Shown here one piece after another: positions 44,156 to 63,758 of a DNA stretch of 64,000 nt. The DNA is from Pavona decussata (taxonomy: Eukaryota): contig CDRNST010000148.1 in assembly GCA_977016875.1 (NCBI GenBank), positions 2,666,001 to 2,730,000 on the forward strand. The letters run 5' to 3'. The translations under genes and the position numbers were made by a program. Numbering within the stretch: position 1 is the stretch's first letter; every line of letters begins with the position of its first letter. A model generated the notes under the pieces. The model saw only the letters and a program-made list of their open reading frames with translations. It was not told where the DNA came from and made no database searches.

Positions 44156-44527
44156 CCTTCCGTGCTTTCTTTTTAATGTTTATAAAATTCAATTCCGTGT
44201 CAGCAAAAGGGATGCCGGCTCACCGCATTCAACACTAGAAACAAACCAAAATTAAGACCAAAATTAAAAGAGGATCTTTTCGCACCTATAACGTCTGATG
44301 AATGAAGAGCTATAGCAAGCTAACCAATCAAAATCTGGGGATTGTCATTTTTAATTCATCTAAAACAATGCATGAGGAAGCTAACCTTTTAATATTGACC
44401 TTCACTGCACGATAACGTCACCTTAACCATAACTCGATAATTTACCCGCAAGTTCAAAAACGGTGATAAAAGGCACCGGCGTACTTGCCTGTTTTAATAA
44501 TTCGTTGGATGCGAAGGGAGATGAGAC

Positions 44528-47265
44528 ATGGTGCCATTAATAACTTTTCTGTACGTTTCTTTAAGTTGCCTAATTACCTTGAGTAACCTTTTGGTTATAC
44601 TGGCGTTTAAAAGGACTCCGATCTTGAGAAAAGCCACCAATTTTTCTCTTGTTTCCTTGGCAGTGGCGGATTTATTCGTGGGTGTAATTGTTTTGCCTCT
44701 GAGAACTCTGGAAGCACAAACTTTCAACTGGACACGAAGCCTTTATTGGTGTCAATGTTCCCTCAGTTTAACTCTACTAAGCTTATCTGCTTCGGCGCTG
44801 AATCTTTCAATTGTCACAACTGAGCGTTATTTTGCCGTCATCCTACCACTACTATATCAAAGCAAAATCACTTCCCGGCGACTTTTTTACTCGATAATTT
44901 TTGTTTGGATCGTTGCGCTTCTGGTGTCGTTTTTACCATTCGTTGCTTTGAAGAGCACCACAGCTCAAGAACGAAGTCGCCAACATAAAATTTGCCGTTT
45001 TGCGGACACGATGAGCGCTGAATATCTGACTTTTTTTGTTTCCATTATCGTGTTAATTCCAACTTTGTTTATAAGTTACGCCTACATAAGGATGTATCGT
45101 GCTGCAAACAAGGTAAGACGCCGCTTAAAATCGCTGCAGGTGCCAAACGGAGGAGGGGACATCATGTCAGTCTTGAAGGAGTCCAAGGCCGCCAAGACGA
45201 TTGGTGAGTTTGTAGACTTCACTGAACAACTCAGATCTACTTCTTTATTATACGGTGATGAATGAAATTTTAAATTAAAAAAAAAATAGAGAGAACAAGA
45301 GAGAGTTAAAAAAACGCAACAACTCTTTCAGGGATGTAAATTTCAATAACAAATAATCATATAGCAAGCCATGCCAACCGTCGCCAATTGGCGGCATGTC
45401 GGCTCTGATAACAACATCGATTTTTGCATTATTTATTTTTCTTTGTTTACTTTCCCCAAACATCCTCAATTGATACTTGAGCCAGACACCCGGTTTCTGC
45501 TGCTCGGGAACGAAACAAAGAAAATCTAAATGCAGTGTAAATGGCCGTACATCACGAAAAAAGGCATATTTTTTAGTTTCAGACAAGTCGCTGTTACCAT
45601 TAAGGTAGCCACTGTTGTACAATTAATAACAAGATAACAAACAGCTCCTGCGGCGTGATAAATTGTTAGAACCATCATGTACTTAACAATAAATATTACC
45701 CTTCGAAATCGCGCGGAATATCCCCTGACACTTGACCGATGAGGCCGTAGGCCTAGTTGGCTAAAATCAGGGCGTATTCCGCAAGATTGAGCATTTTTCA
45801 ACGGCAAAGCACAATTTTATTACAGAAAAGCTGAAGAAGATCTTTATTTTGTCATTTTCTCCCCGACGCACGAAATTACGTATATCGTAGGATATCTGTT
45901 GACTACCGACGACGAATATTCAGTGCACTATGACCATATTTGGGCATTGTTACAATGTGTTCAATAATAAGGCATGTAAACAGCACTACAGGAAAGGAAA
46001 TAACACTAGGCAGCTTTCAGAATATGAATCGTCGCAGTGACTTTATCTACAAACTTTAAGGCAATTGTAAAATTCTTTATACTTCACAATAGTGAATTGT
46101 CATATTTTGGCGTTTGTTTTGTTTTGTTTGTTTGTTTGTTTTTTGCACAGACTCGACCACTTTGCATGCACTGAATAACGGTACCGCACAAGAAAGTACT
46201 TCATTTCAATTTTCAGAATTTTATCCACTGACTGAAACATTTCTACCGCCTTTATAAATAGTTGCTGATAATAAACGGCACCATTATTATAAGTCCAGTT
46301 CAGTAGCTTTCATTTAAATGGTACTGAGTTTTTTAACGGTTTTCATCATCAGACTCAAAACGTTTGATTATTTGGGTCCCACAACATCAGCAATTTTTGT
46401 TTAGTACTAACTAAACCGCCGTCTTCTGACCACACAAAAACACATTAATTTTTCAATCATATACTTTGTTCCCGACTAAGTCTGAGTCGCTTTATGTTGT
46501 AGAGTCGGAGAGTTATTGTATCCGGTCTCGTAGGTGAAACAGTTATAAACTGGTTTAAATCCTTTTCTAGTTGACAAAAAAAAAAAAAAGATTTTAAAGA
46601 TTTACAATGCAACGTGCAACTTAGATGCGGCCACTTTTCTTGAGAGCAAGCATCCTTCATATATCATTTGTCTAAATTCACATCTCGGCTCGACCGGTGC
46701 GCTGCTAAAACTCGCCAACCAACCAGCAATCTTGCTAGATATCCAGATTAACCCGCCTCGAGTGGGCTCCCTTGACCCTGTAATCCTATTCTAACTGAAT
46801 ATTTTCCCTCATGAAAGTTTGCAAGTCGAATAAAAGCGACAACCGCACTTTTTTCTGCGTCTGTCAAGCTTTCTTGAGGTCAGTAATTGTTAAAGTAACC
46901 ACTAACATGTTGATCAACCTTTCTTTCCAGGTATAGTAGTTGGTGTGTTTTACCTGTGTTGGATTCCATTCATGATTGCCGTGGTTCTGAGCGCATTTTT
47001 CAAGAATCTCATAACTCCAGTTGTGGTCTTGGTAATATCTACACTCGTCTACAGCAATTCTGCTATGAACCCAGTCCTCTACGGTTACTTGAATCGCGAC
47101 TTCCGTTTGGCTTACAAGAAACTATTTTCCAGGATTTCTTGTCCGTGTAAAAGGGTCCATGTTCACCAGGAAAGAAGTTATGATATATCAGAAATGTCAG
47201 TTCACGAGCTCACACTTTCTCAACAAGTGCGAGGAATATATATCACCGAAACCAGTAGACCTTGA
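44528..47265 (+). CDS. Class A GPCR, paralogue of 22660-24595; exons 44528-45203, 46931-47265
   Basis: SNLLV, SLAVADL, TERYF, ESKAAKT, CWIPF and NSAMNPVLY motifs. Phase-1 intron ATTG|gtgag...ttccag|GT. The N-terminus is uncertain. Confidence 0.92.
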
Positions 47266-49752: not shown

Positions 49753-50008
49753 GGCAGTAACCGTTTGTCGACCTAGCTGACAGGGACGCGCGGGTCTTGG
49801 GACGAGAATGACGTGAGAAGATAAGCCACTTGTTGAAGCTTGGCGGTTTAGGTCACCTGCAGATACGGGTGACTACAACGGAACCAAAACAAGACTGGAG
49901 ATCTAATAAGTGACGCTAGTTTGAGAAACCTCTGTGTACATATGATTTTAGACTAATTTTTGGACTCAAATTCAGCAGGCATTTTACTCGCAAGGTTGAA
50001 TTTTTGGC

Positions 50009-50045
50009 ATGATTCGAGAGAACGTTCTTGTAAAAGCTGCTAAAG
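50009..50045 (+). CDS. Candidate kinesin first coding exon A (MIRENVLVKAAK)
   Basis: ATG...GCTAAAG|gtaag, phase 1, matching the acceptor at 54885. Confidence 0.5.
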
Positions 50046-51240
50046 GTAAGATTAGTGCTAGTGTTATTAGCTCATGCATGTCGGTTTCGCTTCATGTATT
50101 GCGGCTCTGGCTGATCGTATTGCAATCACGTTCCTTTTGATGGTTAAAACAACTAATACTTAGCTAGATAACGAACGATAACAATCCGCATCTCAAAGAT
50201 ATCACTTTTGCAAAAGCCGCAAGATAAGGCCTGCTGTTTTTACCCTCCTTCTATTGTTGGACTCAATCACAGTTTGGCATTCCGACAGATCTGACTTGTA
50301 TTTCACCGGTAAATTAAGTAACCTGGATTTGCTAGTTTCTCTCTTGGAACCACCGCTTTTCTTTGAACCTCTTGTGGCGTAAAATCATTCCTCGATTTAA
50401 TTGTTTCAAACAAGCTTTTTTCCCTGCTTTGTTTGCTGTTTGTTTAATTAATTTATTTTTCTTTCATTAAACCGACTGCTTCAGAAAAACACTATAGAAG
50501 GTCAGCTGTTAAAATAGTTCAACCGGTAATCCGAGTTTAGTCAAATAGCTTTCTGTAGGACTTGAACAATTCTATTAGATCAAGGGACTGTGTTCGTCGC
50601 AGAAAGGAATTTAACAAATTCAGTCCACTCGCTGGACCGGCTAACGAAAATTATTCTCTAAATTATTCGGCTGTGAGCTTTAAACGCACGCTTTACTAAA
50701 TAATTTTCGTACCTTTATTCAACGTCTTTGACCTACATCATCCAGCAATCCGTGCAGAATATAACACTCACTTATCAGTATATTTCTTGCAATTGTAAGG
50801 TGTTTTAGAATGGTACTTGTTGTTTTCTAAACGAAATATGAAGTGACCTTAATGAATCCGATTCAGAAGTCGAAAATAATATACACTGACATGGATTACA
50901 TTGATAAACACAATCAGTGTGATACACTGTACCTGAAAACTGATCGAAACTAACATTGAACGTTCACATGTTCAAGGTGTAGTACAATCCTTTCAGACCA
51001 AAGATCAGACTGATATATATTATAAATTCCTCTTACCAAATAATGCACATTTGCATTAGGTTGGATTGGAGAATTTGGTGTTACATCAAGCTGCTTTCAC
51101 CTTCATGCTCACGACTATTTGGCGAAGGGCGACTAGTTTGTCACAAACAATGTATCCAGTGTAAAAAATGCAAATATTTATTTTAATTCGTTACAAGCGA
51201 TAACCGTAGCAAGCTTTAAACAAGTGTAACTATTTTTCAG

Positions 51241-51476: not shown

Positions 51477-54184
51477 CAGGGGTAGCAGAAAAAAGGGTAT
51501 AAGTTTTTCAGTCGACATTTCGGAAACCTCAAAAGTTTTCTCGAAAAAGGTTTAAATGTTTAAGGAAAATGTCTGAAATTCAGGCAATAGCCCGATTGAG
51601 AAAACACGACAATATTTCTGGCGAAAAATAGCTCGCCTTTCCTCTCGGAAGTTGTATGAAAAGAACGTGCCCTTGAAAAATGGCCCGGCCTATCCTAAGG
51701 ACGCAAGATCATAGCTCTTCAGATAAGTTGGGGGTGGGGGTGGGTGAGGGTGGTGATGACAAAATGAAAGTCGGTTATGGTCCACCCATATATTGTATGA
51801 TGACACCCATAAACGGACAATCAATTTGTTCAGATATTTTTATCAGTTAATGAAGAATTGGTGATACACCAAACTGTAACGGTTAATACATTACTAAACT
51901 TTATCCCATTTGCGGATTCCACTCATGTCTCAGACATTTTATTTGCAGCGAATAACTTTGCCGCACCCATTTTCCAAAAAAACTGATCGATATTTACCAA
52001 TGCTATCACATCACTAGCTTTACGGGTTGTGTTAAACAAACAGTAAACTGGTCAAAACTCGGAAATTACAGCTTGCAAAAGTCGTTAGTCCTTTGAAAAG
52101 AATTGCCATTTGATGAAAATAATCGTTGACTGAACGACTACAACAATAACGTCTTAGCTTCTTGCTTGACATTCAATTGTTCTAAGTTATTTTGTTGTTA
52201 TACCTAATTGTTCAAGCTGATCATGTGTTGAAAAAAACTGTCATTTGTCGAATGCTAGGTCTAATGGCCGGCGAATTTTCGCGCCATTTCAGCCTAAGGA
52301 AGAGGATCTCTTGCCTTTCCGCCAAATGTCCGCTGTGATTCTGACTCTCACCCAATCACAAGCCGTTTAACTACTCATACCTGTAAGATATGTTACGTAA
52401 CGTTCACTTTATAATTTATTAATTAATTACTCCTTGGAGCGTGAAATGCCTTCAAATCGTTTAACCAATGTAAAACGTAAAGTGAAAGAGGATTGAATTG
52501 ATTAAACTAAACCCTGATCTTATTTGTAACGTTTATGCTAATGAAACTAACACGAACTAGAACCTTCTTCAAGTACACCTAAGTGCAACATCGAATTAAA
52601 GTGAAAGCGCGCATGGGTTATATTTACCATTGACGTTACTTTAATATTGCCTCGCCATTGGGTCTAATAAAGCTCAGAGTTACGCCACCTCAGTTCTACA
52701 ACAACAGCGTATTTCAATTGACATTTAAACTGTTGACAGTTAACGTGTCTCCATATCTGGTTTCGTGCTACGCCTAGTGCTGATTTCAATTCGCTTTGTG
52801 ACAACGAAGACGGTTGCAGAACTGCTAAAAATAATATAATACCTTTGGGAGGAGTTGAAGCGAAGGTAACAATTGTGATCAGACCACGTAAATACAAGTA
52901 GTTTGTGTCAAGTTAGAATAGGGAACAAGCTGGATTTTCTAAACTACATGTATTGCGGTCGGCTGATTTGTTTGGGTGGGGTGTTGAAATTATTAGAAGA
53001 AGTAATATTACATTTGCATGTATAGTTCAGGCAATGCTGACTCAAACCCCGATCCAATGAGCAATGTACCTTCATTTTTTTTCCTGCTGTACAAAAAAAA
53101 GACATCACATACGAAGATGTCAGTTTTTCAACGTTTAAATGGTAGCTTCAATTTTACCACATACAGCGTTACTTATTTTATTCAACAATATAATTACATA
53201 AACCAACGCTGGTGGTACTTAGACTCAATAAGTATGTTCTTGATAATATTACTAAACCAATCGCAAGGTCAACTAATATTACAATTGTCATCATTTTTAC
53301 TGCTGATAGTCTTAAATGAACTTACCAGACAACTTAGTGAATGGCAGATCGAAATTTGGTAGCCGTTCTAATTCTGTATCAGTCTTCAAATTGAAAGACA
53401 CTGAGTAGACTATATTTTTATAATCGACCGGCAATAATTGCGTTCAATAATTGTTAAGAAGTTACATATTAATTATCTTTATCCCACTTGTCAGTTTACC
53501 GTTCAAGGTCGGTTAAGGTGACATCAAAACGAGCGAATTATTTCCATCTGCTACAAAACTGCCCCTTTATATTTTATAAAGAATCCTAATCTGGAACTCA
53601 GTCAATCCACGTTGCTAACTGTGTACTGTGTACGGCTGACAGCTCAACTGAGTGTGAAGTGACAATCTATTAAATTGACCTGTCAAAATATTCCTTTCAT
53701 TCTCAAGTAAAAATATTGTAATTGCACCTGAAGGGGAACGAAAAATAATGAGCGATAAAAACTGCTGAATAATCTGTTAACAGTTGAGTGCCAAGGTATA
53801 ATCCAGTTCTCTTACAGCTATCCTTGTTTGTACTGAGAGCGTTCAAACGTTACCGTCTACCGGCGTGTTGTCGGTAGGAAAAAATATTAAAGGAGATGAG
53901 TATTGACTGAGTGGGCCATCCTTAAGTGATAAATCAATTACCTTATTGATGTAGGATGACTCTATCACTGATAATATCAAACCATTTGAAAGCCGAGAAA
54001 ATTGGACGATGTTACACGTATTATCGGCTTAACGTCTGCATCTCACTGACATTCGTTTCTGTTCGTCATTTTTTGTCTTAAGATTTCCAGATCTTTCCTC
54101 AGAGACTGAATTTCAGTCTTGATTTGGCTCTGGAACAGATGAAGGAAATTCTGACTAAACATTAGTCAGGTTTCCTAGACTGAA

Positions 54185-54245
54185 ATGAAACCACAACAAG
54201 GAGAGAAACAGCCGGAAAAAGCGTCAAGCATAAAGCTTGGTAAAG
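54185..54245 (+). CDS. Candidate kinesin first coding exon B (MKPQQGEKQPEKASSIKLGK)
   Basis: ATG...GGTAAAG|gtagg, phase 1, matching the acceptor at 54885. Confidence 0.5.
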
Positions 54246-54884
54246 GTAGGCATAGCTATCAGCCTGTGGTTGCACTGATTTTACACATAATCGTAAATAA
54301 ATAAAAAACAGTCGGGTACTTTATAACTTTAGAGTAGTCTTTCACTTCTCTCAGGAAGAGTAGCCGTGAGCGCCGATAATAATAGCAAAGGTTAGCTGAA
54401 ATTAGTAATTTACAGAACGGAACAGACTGTTACATGCAAAAGTCGCTACACTGTATTGCTGTATTGTACCTTGGATAGCAGATGATTTTGGCAAGAATAA
54501 TATAGTTCTAATCGCTGCACCACGGTACATGGTTATAATAAATCAGACAATTTTTGAGCTACGGCAATTCTAAGATTCTGGTAGACACCATTGACTACAA
54601 GGCTTGATTTTCACAATGCCTTATAATGCTCCTTTCGTTATTTTAAGCATCTCGCATACTGAATTGTGCAGACGAACTATACCAGTCGTGAAATACGCTG
54701 ATTCGACACTTCAGCATATTCGATCCCCCACGACATCTAAATTTTTGAAGCCTGGTACGCTAGCGCCGGAGTTGACCGTTAAATGCCCCTTGCCAAAAAC
54801 AAATGTTCGAGGCAAGGGAAATAATTGACTTGACCTCACTCCGGTGGGCTTAGAAGCTCATGTAGCTTTTGCTCGGTGTTGCAG

Positions 54885-57800
54885 ATTCTGGGCGAGTAAA
54901 AGTCTTTGTGAGGGTACGTCCACCTCGTCCTCATGAAAGCAGCCGCAAAGATCTGATAGCTGTAAATGTCCAAGAGCTCTCTCAGGTAAGTTAAGTTTCA
55001 AAATACAAACAGTGCACAGAAGGGTCTAGGAAAGGGTTAGACGTAGACTGGAGCATGTGCTAGCCTCGTCCCCAAGGAGAGGGGAAAGGCTGGTCAGCGG
55101 AAGTCTCCCACATAAGAACAGCGAAGAACAGGAAGAACAACTGCAAAATATCATTTTATTTACTGTTTTGTCTTTTTTTATTGGTGTAAATGGCTCTAAA
55201 CAATGACTATATGAACGGAGAGGGGAGAGAAGCTCTTCCAGTTGCCTACATCACAAGGAAAGAGTCATTCTGTGCAAGCCATCGACTACACAATCCCAAA
55301 CTAAGCGACGAAGAAAACAGATCGATATTCGACAAATGCAATAACAAGAACGGGCATGGCCACAATTACACGATCAAGATTACTGTTTGTGGGACTGTTG
55401 ATCCCAATACCGGCATGGTTATGAACCTGACAGATTTAAAGAAGCATATGCACAGCGTGTTGGATCCTCTCGACCACAAAAACTTGGATGTTGATATTCC
55501 TTACTTCGTGGATGTTTGCTCAACAGCTGAAAATATCTCTGTTTACATTTGGAATCGCTTGTCGAAACTGTTACCAGAGGGGTCTTTGTTTGAAGTGAAA
55601 GTCAAAGAAACTGGCAAGAATTCTGCTTACTACAGAGGCGAGCGAAGAAACTGAAGATTATACATGTATTTATGCCCGGGGTAGTCAATCGATAATATCG
55701 ATAATCGATAGCATTCGATAACAATCGATAAAAATCGATTAATTTTTTCGAAATTCGATAAAATTCGATAAAATATTATCGAAACTGAATTATCGTTCCA
55801 ATTTTTTGAAACGGCAACACCAAAAGATATTAAAGAACTCGCAGAGACACTTAAAACAACTTCCCTGTTCGTAAAACGATATAAATTGCTTCATCTTTTC
55901 TACAAACTTTTAGTATTACTCAGCGTGTGTTGTATTTGAATGAAATCCGATATAGATCCCTGGTTGATTATTCCACTGTTTTATTTATTTGCTGATGTAA
56001 CACAATCGCACGCTCGTTGCTCTTTCACCCAGTCTTTAAAGGGAAATATTTTCGTGATTTTTTTTACTAAAAATATAAACAAATCATCTAGACGCCCTCG
56101 CGCTCCCCATATTTCTTAGGTTAAACATGGTTTCAAAACCAACGGAACAAAGGAAGAGAAAAAATTTAGACCACAATCTTGAAGCCGAGAACCCGGAAAA
56201 GGAAAAATAATTTACGTTTGTAATCGAACCCGGTTAATTGAACAATAAAATCAGGAAGAAAATCATAATGCAGTCTCTTTGGTCTCTTGTACAATGCTTG
56301 TCAACAAATCATTTCATTGCCGCCTTTGAAATCTGCATTTAAAGGGTCACAATCAAACGCTCCCTCAACGGAAACAGGATAAGTTTTATCGATTCAATAA
56401 CGATAGATGAATCCGATAAAATCGATAACATTACATTTCGTCGGCGTTTTATCGATTGACCGATAAAATCAATATCATTTAAGTTCAATTTATCGATAGA
56501 TATCGATTTATCGAATGATTTTCCGATATCAATTTTTAGCGATTGACTACCCCGGGACTTATGATGGGCGGTGATGGGATATGCCCTTGCAGATTATTTA
56601 ATTAGAATAAGAATTTATGCTGCTTGAACATATTTATTGGTATATATATGTCTCATTCTTGAAAACTGAAAAAAAGGAGGAGCGTCACAAAAGTATGCCT
56701 AGACATGGCCATATAGCCTGAGGATTTTTAGCCAGGTATTCTACAGTTACTCCACTCGAATCATTTGTATACTGGACACATTTAATGATCTAAGCTCATC
56801 TTTAAAATTTGTGATCAAATACAGATAAAGTTCTTAGTAAGAAGTAACACTCAGGTTTAGTGTGAGTATAGATTGAAGCAAATGTGTTATTTTGCACACC
56901 CATTGACCAGTTATACTGATTGAATATTTTGCATCAATAGTTATATTTAAGTCTCATGAATTTAAGGACGGTGCCCGCTGATAAAGAAGTACTTTCGTGT
57001 GGATTATGACTATGCTGGGAAAGCAGATCTCAGCAAGGGCTATTGAAATCGAAAAAGAAAATTGGGGGTAACCACGCATTTTTCAGAGGTAATTAAGCAT
57101 CAATTATTCTTTAAAACAGTAAAATACAAAGCAATGTATGGCATTTTTTTTTTCCAAATTGAAGCTTTATTATCTCTGAAAAATGCATGGTTACCCCAAA
57201 TTTTCTTTTTGAATACCAAAAGCATTTGCCAAGTTCTGCTTTCTCTGCATAGTTGTAAACTGCGCAAAAATATCCCAGAATTGGCAGGTGCCACCCATAG
57301 GAAACCCGAGTACCTCGAGATGCGCTGAGTGGATGCACAGTAACAAAAGTAGGCACCATTCTTAAGTTAATTTTGGAATAAACATGAATGGCATTTGGAA
57401 AGGTTAAGGATTTGTATCGTTTGGTTGAAATTTAAACAGAGACAAATTAGGGTACATTATTTTCTCAAAAAGTTGTAAAGCAAATTTATCAATAAATAAA
57501 AAGGTTTCAGTTGAGTTTGAATTCAGGTCCATAGCAATGGTAAGCAGTGACCCTAACCTGATGCCAATACTAACAATGTACATACTAATAAATGCTAAAA
57601 TCCATACTAGTTTTCCCATTTCTTGAACCTAACTCAAGTGAGTTTGAACCCAAATTAGCTCAAAGTTATAAATTTCATGGTCCCATTTACAAAAGTTGTA
57701 AAGGGGATGAAAAATGGACTTAAATGATTACACGCTTCCATTAGCCTTTACAAACTCAAAATGATCTTGTTTTTACATAATTTACTGAGGACGGAATCTC

Positions 57801-60800
57801 CTGTTACAACATGAGTAAAGGTTTTGTTATGCACCTATTAATTAAGCCATGGGGAGGGGTGGGAGATGATGGACAGGTGTGGAGCGTTTTTAAATCTGTT
57901 AAAACAGATTTCTTTGTTTTGGCAAATCACCTCAAGTGATTCAGCCCAGTCTGAGAGTACCTGTCTGGGTAAACAGCTGTAAGAGTATAATAATGCAATT
58001 TTTGTCTTCAGGAGCCACATGTTGATTTTTTCAGTGGATAGTTATAATTTTCGCCGGATTTTTTTGCATGTTTCCCCAAGACCCTGTTAAGGCTCATTCT
58101 GATAACCAACTGCTTGAAAACTGGTGAAATAACATGAAGTGAAATTGCAATCTCATGTATTTTCTCGTTTATTTATTTATCAATTATCTAATTGACTAAA
58201 TTAATTTATTATTTCAGATTCATGTTTCAGATCCAAGGCACAGCTGGGAAAAAACCTTTAATTTTGATCATGTATTCCCGAAAGAGTCCACGAACCAAGA
58301 GGTGTGTTTTCCTTACCTGTCAATCAACAAAACTTCAACACTGTTGAGTTTTAACCAGGGGACATTCGATGCTTCATTGTATAAGGGATTATGAAAAGTG
58401 CCAAATCTGACCAGAAATTAGCGGCTTCCTTAATTTCACTTTCTGGCCGACATATTAGCTTGCGACAATGACAAAAACTGGTATATAATCTCCCATTTGA
58501 CACACTCTTAAAGTGTCGATTACTTTTACAGTGCAACGAACTCGGAGCCACCCAACATTGATCGGGCAATCACAGGTCGCGTTTACAAAAAAAGGAGTCT
58601 GGCTTTGGTAGTATGTAAACCAATCAAAAATGAGAACATTTTTTTAAATTTCAAAGTGTTGGTTTTTTCGGTGATCCCGGTTGTGTTCGTTGCGCTGTAA
58701 AGTTGTTGACGCCTTTTTTTACAAATTGAAAATCCATGAATTTTTAAGTGTCAATCCTGAAATGACAATTTGGGGTCAAATTTGAACGGCTGCTTTCATT
58801 GAAGAAACCTGAGTTCAACCTTACAATATAACTGGTCGAGTGAGTTGAGGGGTATGAGCAGGGCCGTAGCCAGAAAAAAATAAGGACTGAGGCAATACCC
58901 ATGGTTCAATTCCCGGCCTAGCAATTTAGGGTCTTTATGATGATTACGTTTAAACAAAACACTGGGATCAAACCTTATTTGACAAAAATTCCGCTAAGAG
59001 CCCTTAAGGCCATCTAGACCTAGAGATCGAGGTGAATTTTTTTTTTTTTTGGGGGGGGGGGGGGAGGGGGCTATTTAAATGCTACTTTAGGGGCTCTGTG
59101 TTCTTGTATGCGGCTGTTTAATGTGTTTGTTGGCGGTTTGTTTCTACAGGAAGGCCTTAGATAACAACGACCTAAACCAGGTTTGCCTGACCAGAGATTT
59201 CGTGAAAAGAAGGGTTTATAGGGGGGGGGGGGGGGTGCTCAGTCTCGCAGGCTCATAAAACTTGGTCTCGGCCGTTCTCATTTGAGGATTTTCATTTCTA
59301 AATGGCAACGAAGTTAGCTGTTAAATGCCAGCGTTATTCGCCTTCGCCCGCTAGCATGCCACCGCTGTAGAGGCTCGAGCGGGTCCACAGGGATTTCGCA
59401 GTGGACATAGGCTAATGCAAGGCCATTCAGCCTGTTAGAGCCCATCAACGAACGGTACCAGGTCTTCAACCTGTGGAGAGGGCTTAACCTGCGCTCGCAC
59501 GAACAGCTTCCTGTACTTAGTGGCGTTGCCGCCTGTCCGGTTTTTGTCTCTACAATTTTAAAACTTCTTTCCGACTATCTCCGGTGGCTTCGTCACTGAC
59601 ACAACCATCTCTACCAGATAAAATGAAAGACAAATTTGCTTCGCTGAATATATACTAGTAATGGCAAAACAAGGTTAAATTTTGGTTCGATTATTGAGAA
59701 GAACTGAAAGCATGTTATGAGAGCAACTACTTTCCGCTTTCTTTGAAAAAAGCTGTTGATAGAACGCTGCATTTTGATATATTTTTCTCACTCAGAACAG
59801 AGAAGACAGAAGACTCGAGAAATGGCGTAAAAACACATGAAAACAAGACAGTTTTCTTTGGGAAGCCGCTGCCTGGTTGGCATGAATTTTTGCTTAATTT
59901 TTCTTACCTGTAATTCAGGGCACTGCCTGATTCGCGTTATCATTCAACATAATATCATGTTGCGTTAACATTTTTTTTTTTACTTATTTAACTGTTTGTG
60001 AATTTGTCAACAATGACTGAGGCAAGTGCCTCGGTTTGCCTCATACTGGCTACGGCCCTAATGAGGAAGTTTCATTCGATCGTTACAACTATGGTACCTT
60101 AAAAAATAAATTTACTCAAATGTAAATACTACAATGCAAGCGTTTTCTCTTTTCAGGTATGCAGTACTGTAAGCAGACCCCTGGTTAAAGCTGCTCTAAA
60201 TGGATTCAACGGAACGCTGATGGCGTACGGACAGACAGGATCAGGTCTGGTGCCTGCGGGTATTTTTGTGTTATGATTAAAATTAATTAAGGTAGAGCCA
60301 AAAATATGAAATTCTTGGGAAAAACGTTGCCTAGTTCCTAGGCCTCTCTTTGTCTTTCATCTCGGTCAATCCGTTTCGGGTCACGTTGTCCGAGCAAAAA
60401 AGCGAGGCTTTCCCCGGCCGTTCGCCATGGTTACGTCACCGAAACGAGTTGATTGTAAGGGCTTGAGAAAGAGCCGTACAAGGACTAGGCAATGAAAACG
60501 GTCATACGCATGAGCGTGTTTCAAAGGAGAGAGCTTGCCCAGAGCAAAGGGGCGTGGGTAGTTCATGGAGGAAAAAAAAAGTTTCAAATAATGATTTCGT
60601 TACAAAGGATTATGCCTCGCCCCAGTCTCTACGACAACAAAACATGACATCATGGGCTTGTTGATCGTTTTAGGTAAGACGCATACACTAATGGCCCCGG
60701 ATGGTATCACGGCTGGTGTGATTGAAAGGTGTTTTAAGAAAATTACACAGGATGATATCCATGAGTACAAGGTACAGTCTGTAATAGGGTGATTATGGTT

Positions 60801-63758
60801 TCAGTGTCTACCATGTAATACAGATTCCAGAAATGTTCGTTATCCCTTTCAACGGCCACTAGTTAAAAGATCAAGGCAAGGCCTTTTTGGCCACGCCTAA
60901 AATAGAACGTTGTTCACTTGACTAATCAGATTTCTCAAAATTGAGTGACGTCAAAGAGAAATATTGATTGATTTGCAGGAAGTTGTTAGGCAACAGTCCT
61001 AAACCGATTAAAAGCCGCTCACGTATGTTTTTGTCGCTCCCCCCCATCCTCCCCCCCCCCCCCCCCAAAAAAAAAAATTGAAAGGTATTTTCTAGGTCGT
61101 TTATTGTTTGGGGTTTCTTCGTGCGTTTATCATTTTAGGGTCATCAGTGCGAAAATTGGTCTAGCCACATTGCCCTGGTGGTTTCGCTGAATGATTCTGC
61201 GTACATGCGCACTATGGTTGCGTCAAATCAACGTGTTAATAGAGAGATTTAACTCCAGCAGCGCGCCTCAAGCAATAAACCCACAATGTCGATATTTCTC
61301 TGCAGGTGACCATGTCGTACTTACAAATTTACCAGGAGAAAATCTACGACTTACTCAACTCCACCAACAAGGTCGAACTAAGCCTTAGGGAACATCCCGT
61401 GAAAGGTTTGGATCTATATAAACTAACTGTGACATACTTTCTGGAGTACTTCGTACCCTATGTTTTGCTTTTGAAACTACGTACTTTTGTGCAACTACGT
61501 CTTTTAGAGTGGGTTCCCAGTTGTGTGTTGCGTGTTGCGTGATGCGTGATACGGGCCGCGTGTTTCGTGTTGCTTCCTACCTGTTCCATACTTCATTCTG
61601 AGTACTCAGTGCGAGACCAGTGTTAGATGCTCTTTTCCACTTTTCCACGTCACGTTGCATATTGCGCACTGCGTATTCTACGTATTCCCTCAGTTCATGA
61701 AGATGTCAAATAATATACACCAATATGTGTACACATGATTATTACATATATCTTGCTAAACGTCTGTCACAATTTTTGATGCATACAAGGATTCCTTATC
61801 TATTTAATTTCCTTTACAAAAAACTTGCGTTTTTCATAAACCTATAGGTATCTACGTGGAAAACCTTTCAGAGTTCGTGGTACGAAGTCCCTCAGAAGTA
61901 TTAAGTCTTTTAGCTGTAGGAAAGAAAAGACTTGTTTTCGCCGAGACTAAAATGAACAGGAACTCAAGCAGGTTTGGGGACATCTCTTTATACATTAGAC
62001 TTAAAAATCGTCGAGGACGAGAATGAAGACTTTTCGTGCCTCGTTCCTCGCTTGTTCGTGCTTTCTGCCTCTCTGAAGTAAAAAGAAAAAAGACTGTTTT
62101 TAGTCTATTCATTTTCTGAATCAGGGCCGGTTATTCGAAAGCCGATTAACTCATATCATTTCGTTCTTTGAAAATGTTGTTGAAACTAATTTTAATGTCA
62201 AGATACAGAGAAGTCTAAGTCAAAATTGAAGGGCAAAATCTGTAGTGGTTACTGAGTAATTGAGCTTGAACGAAACGGAGTTTACTCTAATTCCTGGGTA
62301 AGCTTAACCCGGCGTGCTTTGATCATCTCGGATCTTATCGTTTTTTTTCGATTAATTAGGCCTGACTTTGTACATAAATGTTTTCCGATGATGGCAGCTA
62401 CCAACACATTCAAATTTAAAAGACAATAATAGACCTTAACACTGGCGAATGATGACGGCGAGGTCGATTGTTCTCCTTCTGAAAATGACATCATCACATG
62501 TCATGTAAGGTTACTGACTCATTGACTGTTTTGCTCTTACTCAGGTCCCACTCTGTTTGTCAGTTGAGTATTGAAAGAACTCTAAACAAGAACAAGGTCC
62601 AAACAGAAGGGAGCAGCAAACCAAGTAAGTCGATCAATGCCGTATCTGTGCCGCTTATAGCCCTTCGCAAGGGCTTAAGGTGGCTTATCAGCGTTTGAGG
62701 TAGGGGGGGGGGGGGGAGGATAAAGGGATTTTTAAGAGCACAAAGGAAAAAACGATCTGATAATGGAATTGTTCTTAACTAATTACGGCAGACACACAAA
62801 CAAGCTCTTTCGTGTGAAATTGCAGTCTCCCAGGATGAGAAAAATAACCGATACGTTTTCATATCCTAATCCATCAATTTCATTCGTCTTCTATCCGAAA
62901 TAAATGTGTTCTTAGAGACTGTGTAAAAATGCACCAGAGTCATGAACGTGAAATTCTAAGCAAGGGATTTTGAAGAGCACAAAGGAAAAAACGATCTGAT
63001 AATGGAATTCTTAACTAATTACGGCAGACACACAAACAAGCTCTTTCGTGTGACATTGCAGTCTCTCAGGATGAGAAAAATAACCGATACGTTTTCATAT
63101 CCTAATCCATCAATTTCATTCGTCTTCTATCCGAAATAAATGTGTTCTTAGAGACTGTGTAAAAATGCACCAGAGTCATGAACATGAAATTCTAAGCAAA
63201 GTTCTGCTGGAAACTGCAACGCCATAGCTGAAATTGAATGCAATTTGTGATTACGTATCAGCTAATGAAACCTTTTTTCTCGTTCAGCTTCAAGCCAGGT
63301 GCAAGATCCCAAAGAAGGAACGGCAGCTGGAGTCGATAAGAGCAGTGAGGTATGAAGCTGAAGATATCGACGTTAAACTTAAAACGGTGATGGGTTATCA
63401 TCATAATTTGTTTCCATATATAATTATTATGTCTAGTACTTCAGTAACTATCACATATCATTGAAGTTAATTCACCATTATTAGTTTGATTCTAACAGAT
63501 GACACAAAAGCAAGCTAATCACAATGCTGGCATTGCCGCAAAGTTGCAGATGGACTTATTTGCCAAGGACTAGTTGTTCCTTAAAGCATTACGTTTACGC
63601 GATTAAGACACAGCATTCACTTTTTTCTAGTCGCTAAGTAGGTAGAAATTTAACCTGGTGTAGCACACCAGTTTATTCAACAATGACAATTCTGTTTTTG
63701 TTTCATCTTTCACCAGGGTTTGGAAGATGATGTGAAAAGTGACGTGACAGAAGAGGAG
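54885..63758 (+). CDS. Kinesin-like protein, N-terminal motor domain, partial (continues past the window); exons 54885-54985, 58218-58301, 60157-60244, 60674-60771, 61306-61405, 61848-61971, 62545-62624, 63288-63349, 63717-63758
   Basis: RVKVFVRVRP, FNFDHVF, GFNGTLMAYGQTGSGKT (P-loop), SYLQIYQEKIYDLL, GIYVENL and MNRNSSRSH (switch I). All junctions are GT-AG and phase-consistent. Confidence 0.93.
55190..55654 (+). CDS. PTS: 6-pyruvoyl tetrahydrobiopterin synthase, intronless, 154 aa
   Basis: FCASHRL, KCNNKNGHGHNY (catalytic Cys and Zn-binding His), GMVMNLTDLK, LDHKNLD, STAEN, ET and YRGE motifs of animal PTPS in one uninterrupted ORF. Confidence 0.96.
   Translation: MALNNDYMNGEGREALPVAYITRKESFCASHRLHNPKLSDEENRSIFDKCNNKNGHGHNYTIKITVCGTVDPNTGMVMNLTDLKKHMHSVLDPLDHKNLDVDIPYFVDVCSTAENISVYIWNRLSKLLPEGSLFEVKVKETGKNSAYYRGERRN
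55675..56556. mobile_element. Non-autonomous TIR transposon with ATCGATAA subterminal repeats
   Basis: TIR cccggggtagtcaatcg / cgattgactaccccggg; clustered atcgataa repeats at both ends; flanks atttatg / acttatg. Confidence 0.85.
56966..57361. mobile_element. Kolobok-like MITE, family A, copy 2
   Basis: TTAA flanks; colinear with 24713-25105. Confidence 0.85.
58859..60060 (-). mobile_element. Internally deleted hAT element with 5-bp TSD (hAT5-like), retaining the transposase C-terminal dimerisation domain (~59315-59530)
   Basis: TIR cagggccgtagccag / ctggctacggcccta; ATGAG on both sides; the minus strand encodes GSCSCERRLSPLHRLKTWYRSLMGSNRLNGLALAYVH...RRRITLAFNS*. Confidence 0.85.
60331..60490. 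mobile_element. Short TAG...CTA MITE
   Basis: ctagttcctaggcctct...agagccgtacaaggactag with an internal caatccgtttcgg / ccgaaacgagttg inverted pair. Confidence 0.45.
62723..63197. repeat. Tandem duplication, two ~238-bp copies, in a kinesin intron
   Basis: 62723-62961 and 62962-63197 differ by only a few substitutions and small indels. Confidence 0.92.

Follow-up and report, generated by a model that had tools for sequence, protein, structure and literature searches.

An intact, intronless PTS gene predicted within a kinesin intron, on the same strand, in stony corals

Results and Discussion

A PTS reading frame inside a kinesin motor-domain intron

The window analysed here is a 64,000-nucleotide stretch of Pavona decussata DNA, and its forward strand carries a 154-amino-acid open reading frame (55190-55654) in a single uninterrupted exon. 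The translated frame matches the entire Pfam PTPS model (PF01242, positions 1-121 of 121; E=6.5e-35) with 120.2 bits, above the Pfam gathering cut-off of 22.4 bits, and aligns with rat PTPS (1b66) at E=8.7e-54. In this alignment both the zinc triad (H31, H56 and H58, corresponding to rat His23, His48 and His50) and the catalytic set (C50 for Cys42, D95-H96 for Asp88-His89 and E140 for Glu133) are complete, as the original prediction of a complete 154-residue PTS frame with its catalytic motifs had it. Identity to the vertebrate enzymes is about 60-65%. An ESM Atlas look-up returned bacterial PTPS clusters only and was of no taxonomic help. PTPS converts dihydroneopterin triphosphate to 6-pyruvoyl tetrahydropterin, which is the predicted activity of the coral protein. 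These features confirm, at the level of sequence, an intact and intronless PTS gene, predicted to encode the 6-pyruvoyl tetrahydrobiopterin synthase of the BH4 pathway. The protein resembles eukaryotic PTPS (rat 1b66, human 3i2b; PF01242) in its full-length domain, zinc histidines and Cys/Asp-His/Glu set, but differs from the rat and human type in its variable 18-residue N-terminal tail. The gene differs from its vertebrate counterpart, which has six exons, in having only one.

Exons of a kinesin motor domain lie on both sides of PTS and on the same strand. Upstream is exon a (54885-54985; ...VKVFVRVRPP...), which is read in frame from 54887, preceded by a cag acceptor and followed by a GTAAGT donor at 54986; downstream is exon b (58218-58301; ...FNFDHVF...), which is also conserved across loci. 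The expression data are assembled contigs from runs (X1, X3, X7 and X10) whose RNA nature is assumed, backed only by GT..AG joints, and such contigs cannot give true transcript starts, ends or levels. A GT..AG joint from 54985 to 58218 is present in contigs of X1 and X10, which come from two studies, and a second, from 58301 to 60157, in contigs of X1, X7 and X10. Because RNA-like contigs join 54985 to 58218, PTS is placed inside a spliced 3232-nt kinesin intron, with 204 nt between the exon a donor and the PTS ATG and 2563 nt between the PTS stop codon and exon b. Same-strand nesting with spacings of 204 nt and 2.5 kb had been predicted, and the spliced joint by which that prediction was to be judged is present.

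Further forward-strand motor exons follow at 60157-60246 (exon c, with the P-loop, ...GQTGSG; Pfam Kinesin positions 54-87) and, with approximate bounds, at about 60673-60777, 61300-61431 (...SYLQIYQEKIYDLL...; Pfam Kinesin positions 119-168) and about 61847-61972, and motor exons run on past the end of the window. The 61300-61431 exon matches kinesin motors in the PDB, KIF1A best (E=3e-6). An exon-by-exon search against solved structures was tried for assigning a subfamily and the assignment was dropped, the best matches, KIF1A and KIF3B, both being weak. Exon a is conserved at 74-100% of amino acids in other coral loci (L009-L011, L013-L015 and L027-29). A first kinesin coding exon is predicted on the same strand at 50010-50047 (ATG, 12 codons plus 1 nt, and a GTAAGA donor); it ends in phase 1, matching the two bases with which exon a begins, and its donor is kept in L011 and L013. 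In neither L013 nor L014 does its ATG begin an open frame. On its 5' side, a non-coding block at 49826-49880 (forward strand) is common to the window, L011, L013 and L014, where the flanking sequence is not conserved, and this block may be a promoter-like element of the kinesin gene.

PTS transcripts and a candidate promoter

PTS contigs start at 55114 in X3 and at 55123 in X7, that is, 67-76 nt 5' of the ATG, and both run unspliced into the open reading frame. A contig end does not mark the true start of a transcript, and 55114-55189 (forward strand) is given as a minimal 5' UTR. Between exon a and these starts (54986-55113) the X3 and X7 contigs give zero cover. X10 contains spliced kinesin and no PTS contig, and X3 contains PTS and no joint between exons a and b. 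Six Logan contigs of the Pocillopora type begin 78-101 nt 5' of the PTS ATG and are collinear with the genome, and PTS contigs of a third lineage have an unspliced 5' UTR of about 75-200 nt without kinesin sequence.

The 9-mer GGTCAGCGG (55092-55100, forward strand) is a candidate core-promoter or TSS-proximal element of PTS, on the basis of its conservation and the contig starts. There is a single copy in the 64-kb window and a single copy in each of L009, L010, L011, L014 and L027 (11-20 kb each). Where found, it always lies 98-121 nt 5' of the PTS ATG, in three deep lineages, and PTS contigs begin just 3' of it or inside it. L012, L013 and L015 lack the 9-mer upstream of PTS. An intronic promoter at 54990-55190 had been put forward as one of two possible sources of PTS transcripts, and the contig starts, the uncovered stretch and the 9-mer all fit it, although contigs cannot prove a start. 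We therefore favour a promoter of PTS's own as a candidate; the exact transcript start, and a promoter role for GGTCAGCGG, are inferred from the same observations.

Two apparent links between kinesin and PTS coding sequence were rejected. The 60-amino-acid upstream open reading frame in L039-L042, considered as a kinesin leader, is not kinesin, its shared ending being only the conserved bases around the ATG. Likewise, the N-terminal extensions of the PTS proteins P0011, P0012 and P0017, considered as kinesin-PTS fusions, are plain upstream read-through. A close relative contributes contigs L017-L026, which follow the genome collinearly over 53093-56989; they were left out of the expression evidence because DNA and RNA are indistinguishable in them.

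On the 3' side, a non-autonomous, MITE-like DNA transposon with 21-nt terminal inverted repeats (55675-56556, no strand assigned) is inserted 20 nt beyond the PTS stop codon. At least 40 copies with 77-90% identity are found in the genome. The element is present in X3 junction contigs and absent from X1 and X7 contigs, from L011 (by its spacing of PTS start to exon b) and from the collinear L017-L026. The PTS 3' UTR, within 55655-56990 on the forward strand, spans at least about 450 nt excluding the transposon: an X1 contig covers 55182-55669 and then 56559-56665, and further contigs extend to about 57076. The intron stretch 57435-58031 is silent in contigs. Pocillopora-type contigs end in apparent poly(A) tails, which were discarded; since L030 reads through it, the A-run is genomic and gives no 3' end.

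Conservation and age of the nesting

The exon-PTS-exon layout is repeated in seven other coral loci (L009, L010, L011, L013, L014, L015 and L027-29). One group that shares it encodes a protein identical to Pocillopora verrucosa XP_058967558.1 (the Pocillopora type), and in another relative PTS identity is only 64%, so that the nested layout spans lineages with PTS identities of 64-94%. Synonymous divergence between PTS and the Pocillopora-type CDS is saturated, and dN/dS against more distant orthologues is 0.07-0.15, in agreement with the earlier proposal that selection has kept the gene intact. The nesting and the intronless state are thus old: they are shared by distant stony corals and predate the split of this lineage from Pocillopora. 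We found no literature on coral PTS gene structure.

Source and origin of the nested gene

The second source of transcripts that had been proposed was the kinesin promoter, with PTS serving as an alternative last exon, reached through a joint at 55182 or a retained intron and followed by intronic polyadenylation, so that one transcription unit would yield either kinesin or PTS. Two contigs speak for this route. Contig 1 of X1 joins the exact exon a donor at 54985 to 55182, directly 3' of a 27-nt pyrimidine tract, and the X1 PTS contig continues 5' solely into the final 30 nt of exon a, not into the unspliced 5' UTR. In L031, a Pocillopora-type contig that begins exactly 30 nt before the donor, exon a continues into PTS without splicing; a start at that distance marks a branch point in an RNA assembly graph. 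Host/nested hybrids are, moreover, known in humans (PMC3192792). The X1 junction, however, is a non-canonical GT..AT joint found in a single contig of a single run, and the window, L009, L010 and L011 all lack an AG at this position; a canonical, conserved acceptor, as expected before an alternative terminal exon, was thus not found ahead of the PTS exon. The reading frames also weigh against it. In the hybrid, the kinesin frame overlaps the PTS ATG and stops at 55197-55199, and in the intron-retained form it meets a stop codon 9 nt inside the intron; with the kinesin frame thus closed ahead of the PTS ATG or across it, PTS would be a second cistron in both forms, which would be poor templates for it. 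Finally, X3 and X7 contain PTS contigs with no cover of exon a or of the interval beyond it, and the PTS transcripts of the two other lineages lack kinesin sequence. We consider it unlikely that the kinesin promoter gives rise to most of the PTS, and infer that the hybrid transcripts are minor. That the PTS exon doubles as a regulated alternative last exon of kinesin, through the weak acceptor 8 nt before the ATG or through intron retention, and so curtails kinesin output, seems quite improbable.

The origin of the gene is a separate matter. PTS had been read as a retrocopy, and its lack of introns, set against the six exons of vertebrate PTS, is the point in favour of a recent copy of an intron-bearing parent still present elsewhere in this genome. 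Yet no such parent emerged when all 602 Mb of the assembly were searched in six frames: the other PTS matches are two pseudogenes, both intronless and both from a second PTS lineage, and the nested copy is the sole intact one. Among the hallmarks of a processed retrogene, the gene has the intronless state where relatives have introns, but lacks an intron-bearing parent, a poly(A) remnant and a target-site duplication, as neither an A-run of at least 8 nor a flanking direct repeat above 10 nt was found. The latter two would be erased at such an age. Synteny across corals, which was to have dated the insertion, gives a layout shared with Pocillopora-type contigs and with the 64%-identity relative, and the synonymous saturation likewise speaks against recency. 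It had also been conceded that intronless PTS genes throughout cnidarians would remove the argument for recent retroposition, and the layout shared across corals goes in that direction in spirit. As far as the present data go, a recent retrocopy is refuted, its probability being very small indeed. An ancient retroposition into the kinesin intron, replacing an intron-bearing PTS before stony corals diversified, concerns origin only and is compatible with a working gene under its own promoter. It is suggested by the intronless state of both PTS lineages in these corals, by full-length uninterrupted PTS frames in at least 11 distinct clusters on genomic contigs above 200 kb, and by the introns of bilaterian PTS genes, which are established for vertebrates; among cnidarians, the gene structures weighed are those of corals only. 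On the other hand, the hallmarks of retroposition are gone, and stepwise intron loss, or a kinesin gene growing around an already intronless PTS, fits equally well. We regard ancient retroposition as a tentative account with somewhat less than even probability.

Because the arrangement is old and the gene seems to have a small promoter of its own, we read PTS as an ordinary nested gene and not as a recent retrocopy. It is probably a working gene of one exon that has a short promoter of its own and shares the strand of its host, a kinesin with an N-terminal motor; it sits in the intron after the first motor exon, in an old nesting maintained by selection. PTS transcription would start about 70-100 nt 5' of the ATG, beside GGTCAGCGG, and the transcript would cross the open reading frame unspliced and terminate within the intron before 57435. 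The kinesin pre-mRNA would traverse the nested gene and remove it by splicing 54985 to 58218. The few kinesin-promoter transcripts that reach the PTS exon would be side products of the overlap rather than the enzyme's main source, and purifying selection would keep PTS nested and intronless.

Comparison with known nested genes

This locus offers a clean, deeply conserved same-strand nested enzyme gene, with a candidate promoter element, in a non-bilaterian animal. It also carries a warning for annotation, as coral PTS can be overlooked or fused into a kinesin model. The understanding of BH4 synthesis or of kinesin regulation is unchanged by it, and the nested gene is a point of annotation unless a regulated hybrid transcript is proven.

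Nested genes had been taken to lie mostly antisense to their hosts, a weak premise, since a mammalian survey found only a slight antisense bias and same-strand pairs nearly as common as opposite-strand ones (PMC11694760). Like the host/nested pairs of mammals and Drosophila (PMC11694760; PMC5174743), the coral pair has a short gene contained entirely in a 5' intron of its longer host, and the nested gene's own transcript, a feature of those pairs, is the reading favoured for coral PTS. Unlike them, the coral pair is found in stony corals and has been kept over a divergence that saturates synonymous sites, and its nested gene is a housekeeping-type enzyme and not a young duplicate. Transcriptional interference between host and nested sequences, for example at TXNDC12/KTI12 and with intronic L1, yields host transcripts that retain introns or undergo forced exonization and that terminate early beside the nested gene (Kaer et al. 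2011, PMC3192792). The 54985 to 55182 hybrid and the unspliced L031 contig resemble this kind of interference, but the coral case is known from single contigs alone and uses a non-canonical acceptor. The coral PTS/kinesin pair is a well-kept case of an already known kind of gene nesting.

An intact PTS gene within a kinesin intron

The 64-kb window, which is free of Ns, carries a single-exon coding frame on the forward strand (55190-55654, ATG to TGA) for 6-pyruvoyl tetrahydrobiopterin synthase (PTS). Its 154-aa product matches the Pfam PTPS model over its full length (E=6.5e-35) as well as the rat and human PTPS structures (E about 1e-53), and alignment to the latter indicates that all three zinc histidines (H31, H56 and H58) and all catalytic residues (C50, D95-H96 and E140) are kept. 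Kinesin was searched one exon at a time, with exons unjoined, and its motor exons flank PTS on the same strand: exon a (54885-54985, with a GTAAGT donor) lies upstream, and exon b (58218-58301) and exon c (60157-60246) lie downstream, with more motor exons beyond, past the window end. Phase and a conserved block upstream predict the kinesin first exon at 50010-50047 (+). This non-coding block (49826-49880), about 130-180 nt 5' of the predicted kinesin start, contains CACCTGCAGATAC and GGTGACT, is strongly conserved and common to the window and loci L011, L013 and L014, and is likely a control element of kinesin. A rhodopsin-type GPCR gene (7tm_1; 44525-47262, +) lies upstream of kinesin; the same neighbour is present in L010 and L013, and synteny is therefore wider than the nested pair.

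Contigs from four public runs, each of a different study (X1, X3, X7 and X10), were aligned to 54450-60400. The record does not state that these runs are RNA; they were read as such because exact GT..AG joints are present and intron stretches are empty. The exon a-b joint (54985 to 58218) was seen in X1 and X10 contigs and the exon b-c joint (58301 to 60157) in X1, X7 and X10 contigs, which places PTS inside a spliced 3232-nt kinesin intron, on the host's strand. The original observation of an intact, intronless, same-strand PTS within a kinesin intron was correct in all details. In the intron after exon c, another expressed repeat is suggested at 60221-60400, where several runs reach a depth of 100-430 and have loose ends at 60319 and 60327.

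Age and conservation of the nesting

Six other loci share this arrangement of exon a, single-exon PTS and exon b along one strand, and their PTS is the same protein as in the window (L009 and L010) or is 94% (L011), 75% (L013), 71% (L014) or 64% (L015) identical to it. The same layout is found in three Tara scaffolds (L027-L029) with a PTS identical to Pocillopora verrucosa XP_058967558.1; no exon a turned up within 10 kb in L012 (PTS 81%). PTS dN/dS was 0.15, 0.07 and 0.07 for the window versus L012, L013 and L014, and 0.37-0.52 versus the two closest relatives, where the N-terminal tail holds most of the changes. Between the window PTS and the Pocillopora-type CDS, synonymous sites are saturated, and no A-run or flanking direct repeat is left around PTS. 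On this evidence the nesting is old and purifying selection acts on PTS, as the claim that it was kept by selection had anticipated.

A six-frame search of the whole 602-Mb assembly found one intact PTS copy, the window gene, and no intron-bearing parent. Two intronless pseudogenes (L002/L004, G000:C35:1717769-1718183; L003/L005, G000:C110:300297-300709), each disrupted by in-frame stops and by a frameshift close to residue 69, sit in a duplicated 3-kb segment whose copies are 97% alike, and represent a second PTS lineage, intact elsewhere as a convergent pair in another assembly (L016; proteins P0035 and P0074). Without a parent or hallmarks, and with a layout common to diverged loci, the proposal of a datable retrocopy fails. 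An ancient retroposition is one possible source of the lack of introns.

Transcription of PTS

The expression data are assembled contigs throughout, from which true transcript starts cannot be read. PTS contigs span 55123-55641 in X7, 55114-55262 and 55233-55710 in X3, and 55182-55669 joined to 56559-56665 in X1. Exon a and 54986-55113 have zero contig cover in X3 and X7; X3 has no exon a-b joint although PTS is present, and X10 has no PTS contig although spliced kinesin is present. In one run series, six Pocillopora-type PTS contigs, all collinear with genomic scaffold L027, begin 78-101 nt 5' of the ATG, and contigs of a third lineage (the P0017/P0134 protein cluster) carry 5' UTRs of about 75-200 nt that are unspliced and free of kinesin sequence. 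The 9-mer GGTCAGCGG occurs once in the window (55092-55100) and once each in L009, L010, L011, L014 and L027, always 98-121 nt 5' of the PTS start codon, in surroundings that are otherwise not alignable. The contig starts fall at GGTCAGCGG or just 3' of it, which, together with its position, points to a small intronic promoter belonging to PTS itself. This favours the first of two routes originally proposed, and PTS probably has its own promoter inside the intron. One contig of X3 returns from 55262 to 55114, with a single additional G; candidate explanations are a tandem duplication allele, a circular molecule and an assembly loop.

The other route was transcription from the kinesin promoter, which would make PTS and kinesin either/or products of one transcription unit. 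In X1, the PTS contig opens with the final 30 nt of exon a, which continue directly at 55182, 8 nt 5' of the ATG; the exon a donor is used exactly and a 27-nt pyrimidine tract directly precedes the join. The last two bases skipped are AT, not AG, an AG acceptor is absent at this site in the window, L009, L010 and L011, and the join is seen in one contig of one run. A Pocillopora-type contig (L031) has its start exactly 30 nt 5' of the exon a donor, as expected from a branch in an RNA assembly graph, and continues into PTS without splicing. Together with the X1 hybrid, it shows that some host-started molecules do reach PTS. In the spliced hybrid the kinesin frame runs across the PTS ATG to a stop at 55197-55199, and in the intron-retained form its stop lies 9 nt inside the intron; either way, PTS would be the second cistron. 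We read the host-started molecules as overlap by-products rather than as the chief source of the enzyme; comparable by-products are described for human nested genes (PMC3192792). An either/or switch is unlikely.

The 3' end of PTS

Contig cover at similar depth continues 3' of PTS to about 57040, beyond which a high-copy repeat (about 56960-57434) swamps the signal. This repeat has a summed contig depth in the thousands in all four runs and interrupts all assemblies at the 3' end of PTS; an inverted copy lies upstream of PTS in L013 (9530-9906). The stretch 57435-58031 is silent, with no contig cover in the runs. A MITE-like DNA transposon of 882 nt with 21-nt terminal inverted repeats (55675-56556), which has at least 40 genome copies at 77-90% identity, begins 20 nt 3' of the PTS stop. 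The window, L009, L010 and X3 transcripts carry it, X1 and X7 contigs and the close relatives L011 and L017-26 lack it, and this mixed occurrence looks like a presence/absence polymorphism within the PTS 3' UTR.

Comparison with known nested genes

The original interpretation was partly right, in selection and a probable intronic promoter of PTS's own, and not in a datable retrocopy or a demonstrated either/or switch. A literature search for PTS gene structure in corals found no paper. Host/nested pairs take in more than one-tenth of mouse and human genes, with 5' introns favoured and only a slight opposite-strand bias (PMC11694760), so a same-strand nested gene is not unusual in itself. Like those mammalian pairs, PTS and kinesin form a known kind of arrangement, and the coral PTS-in-kinesin is a further example of it.
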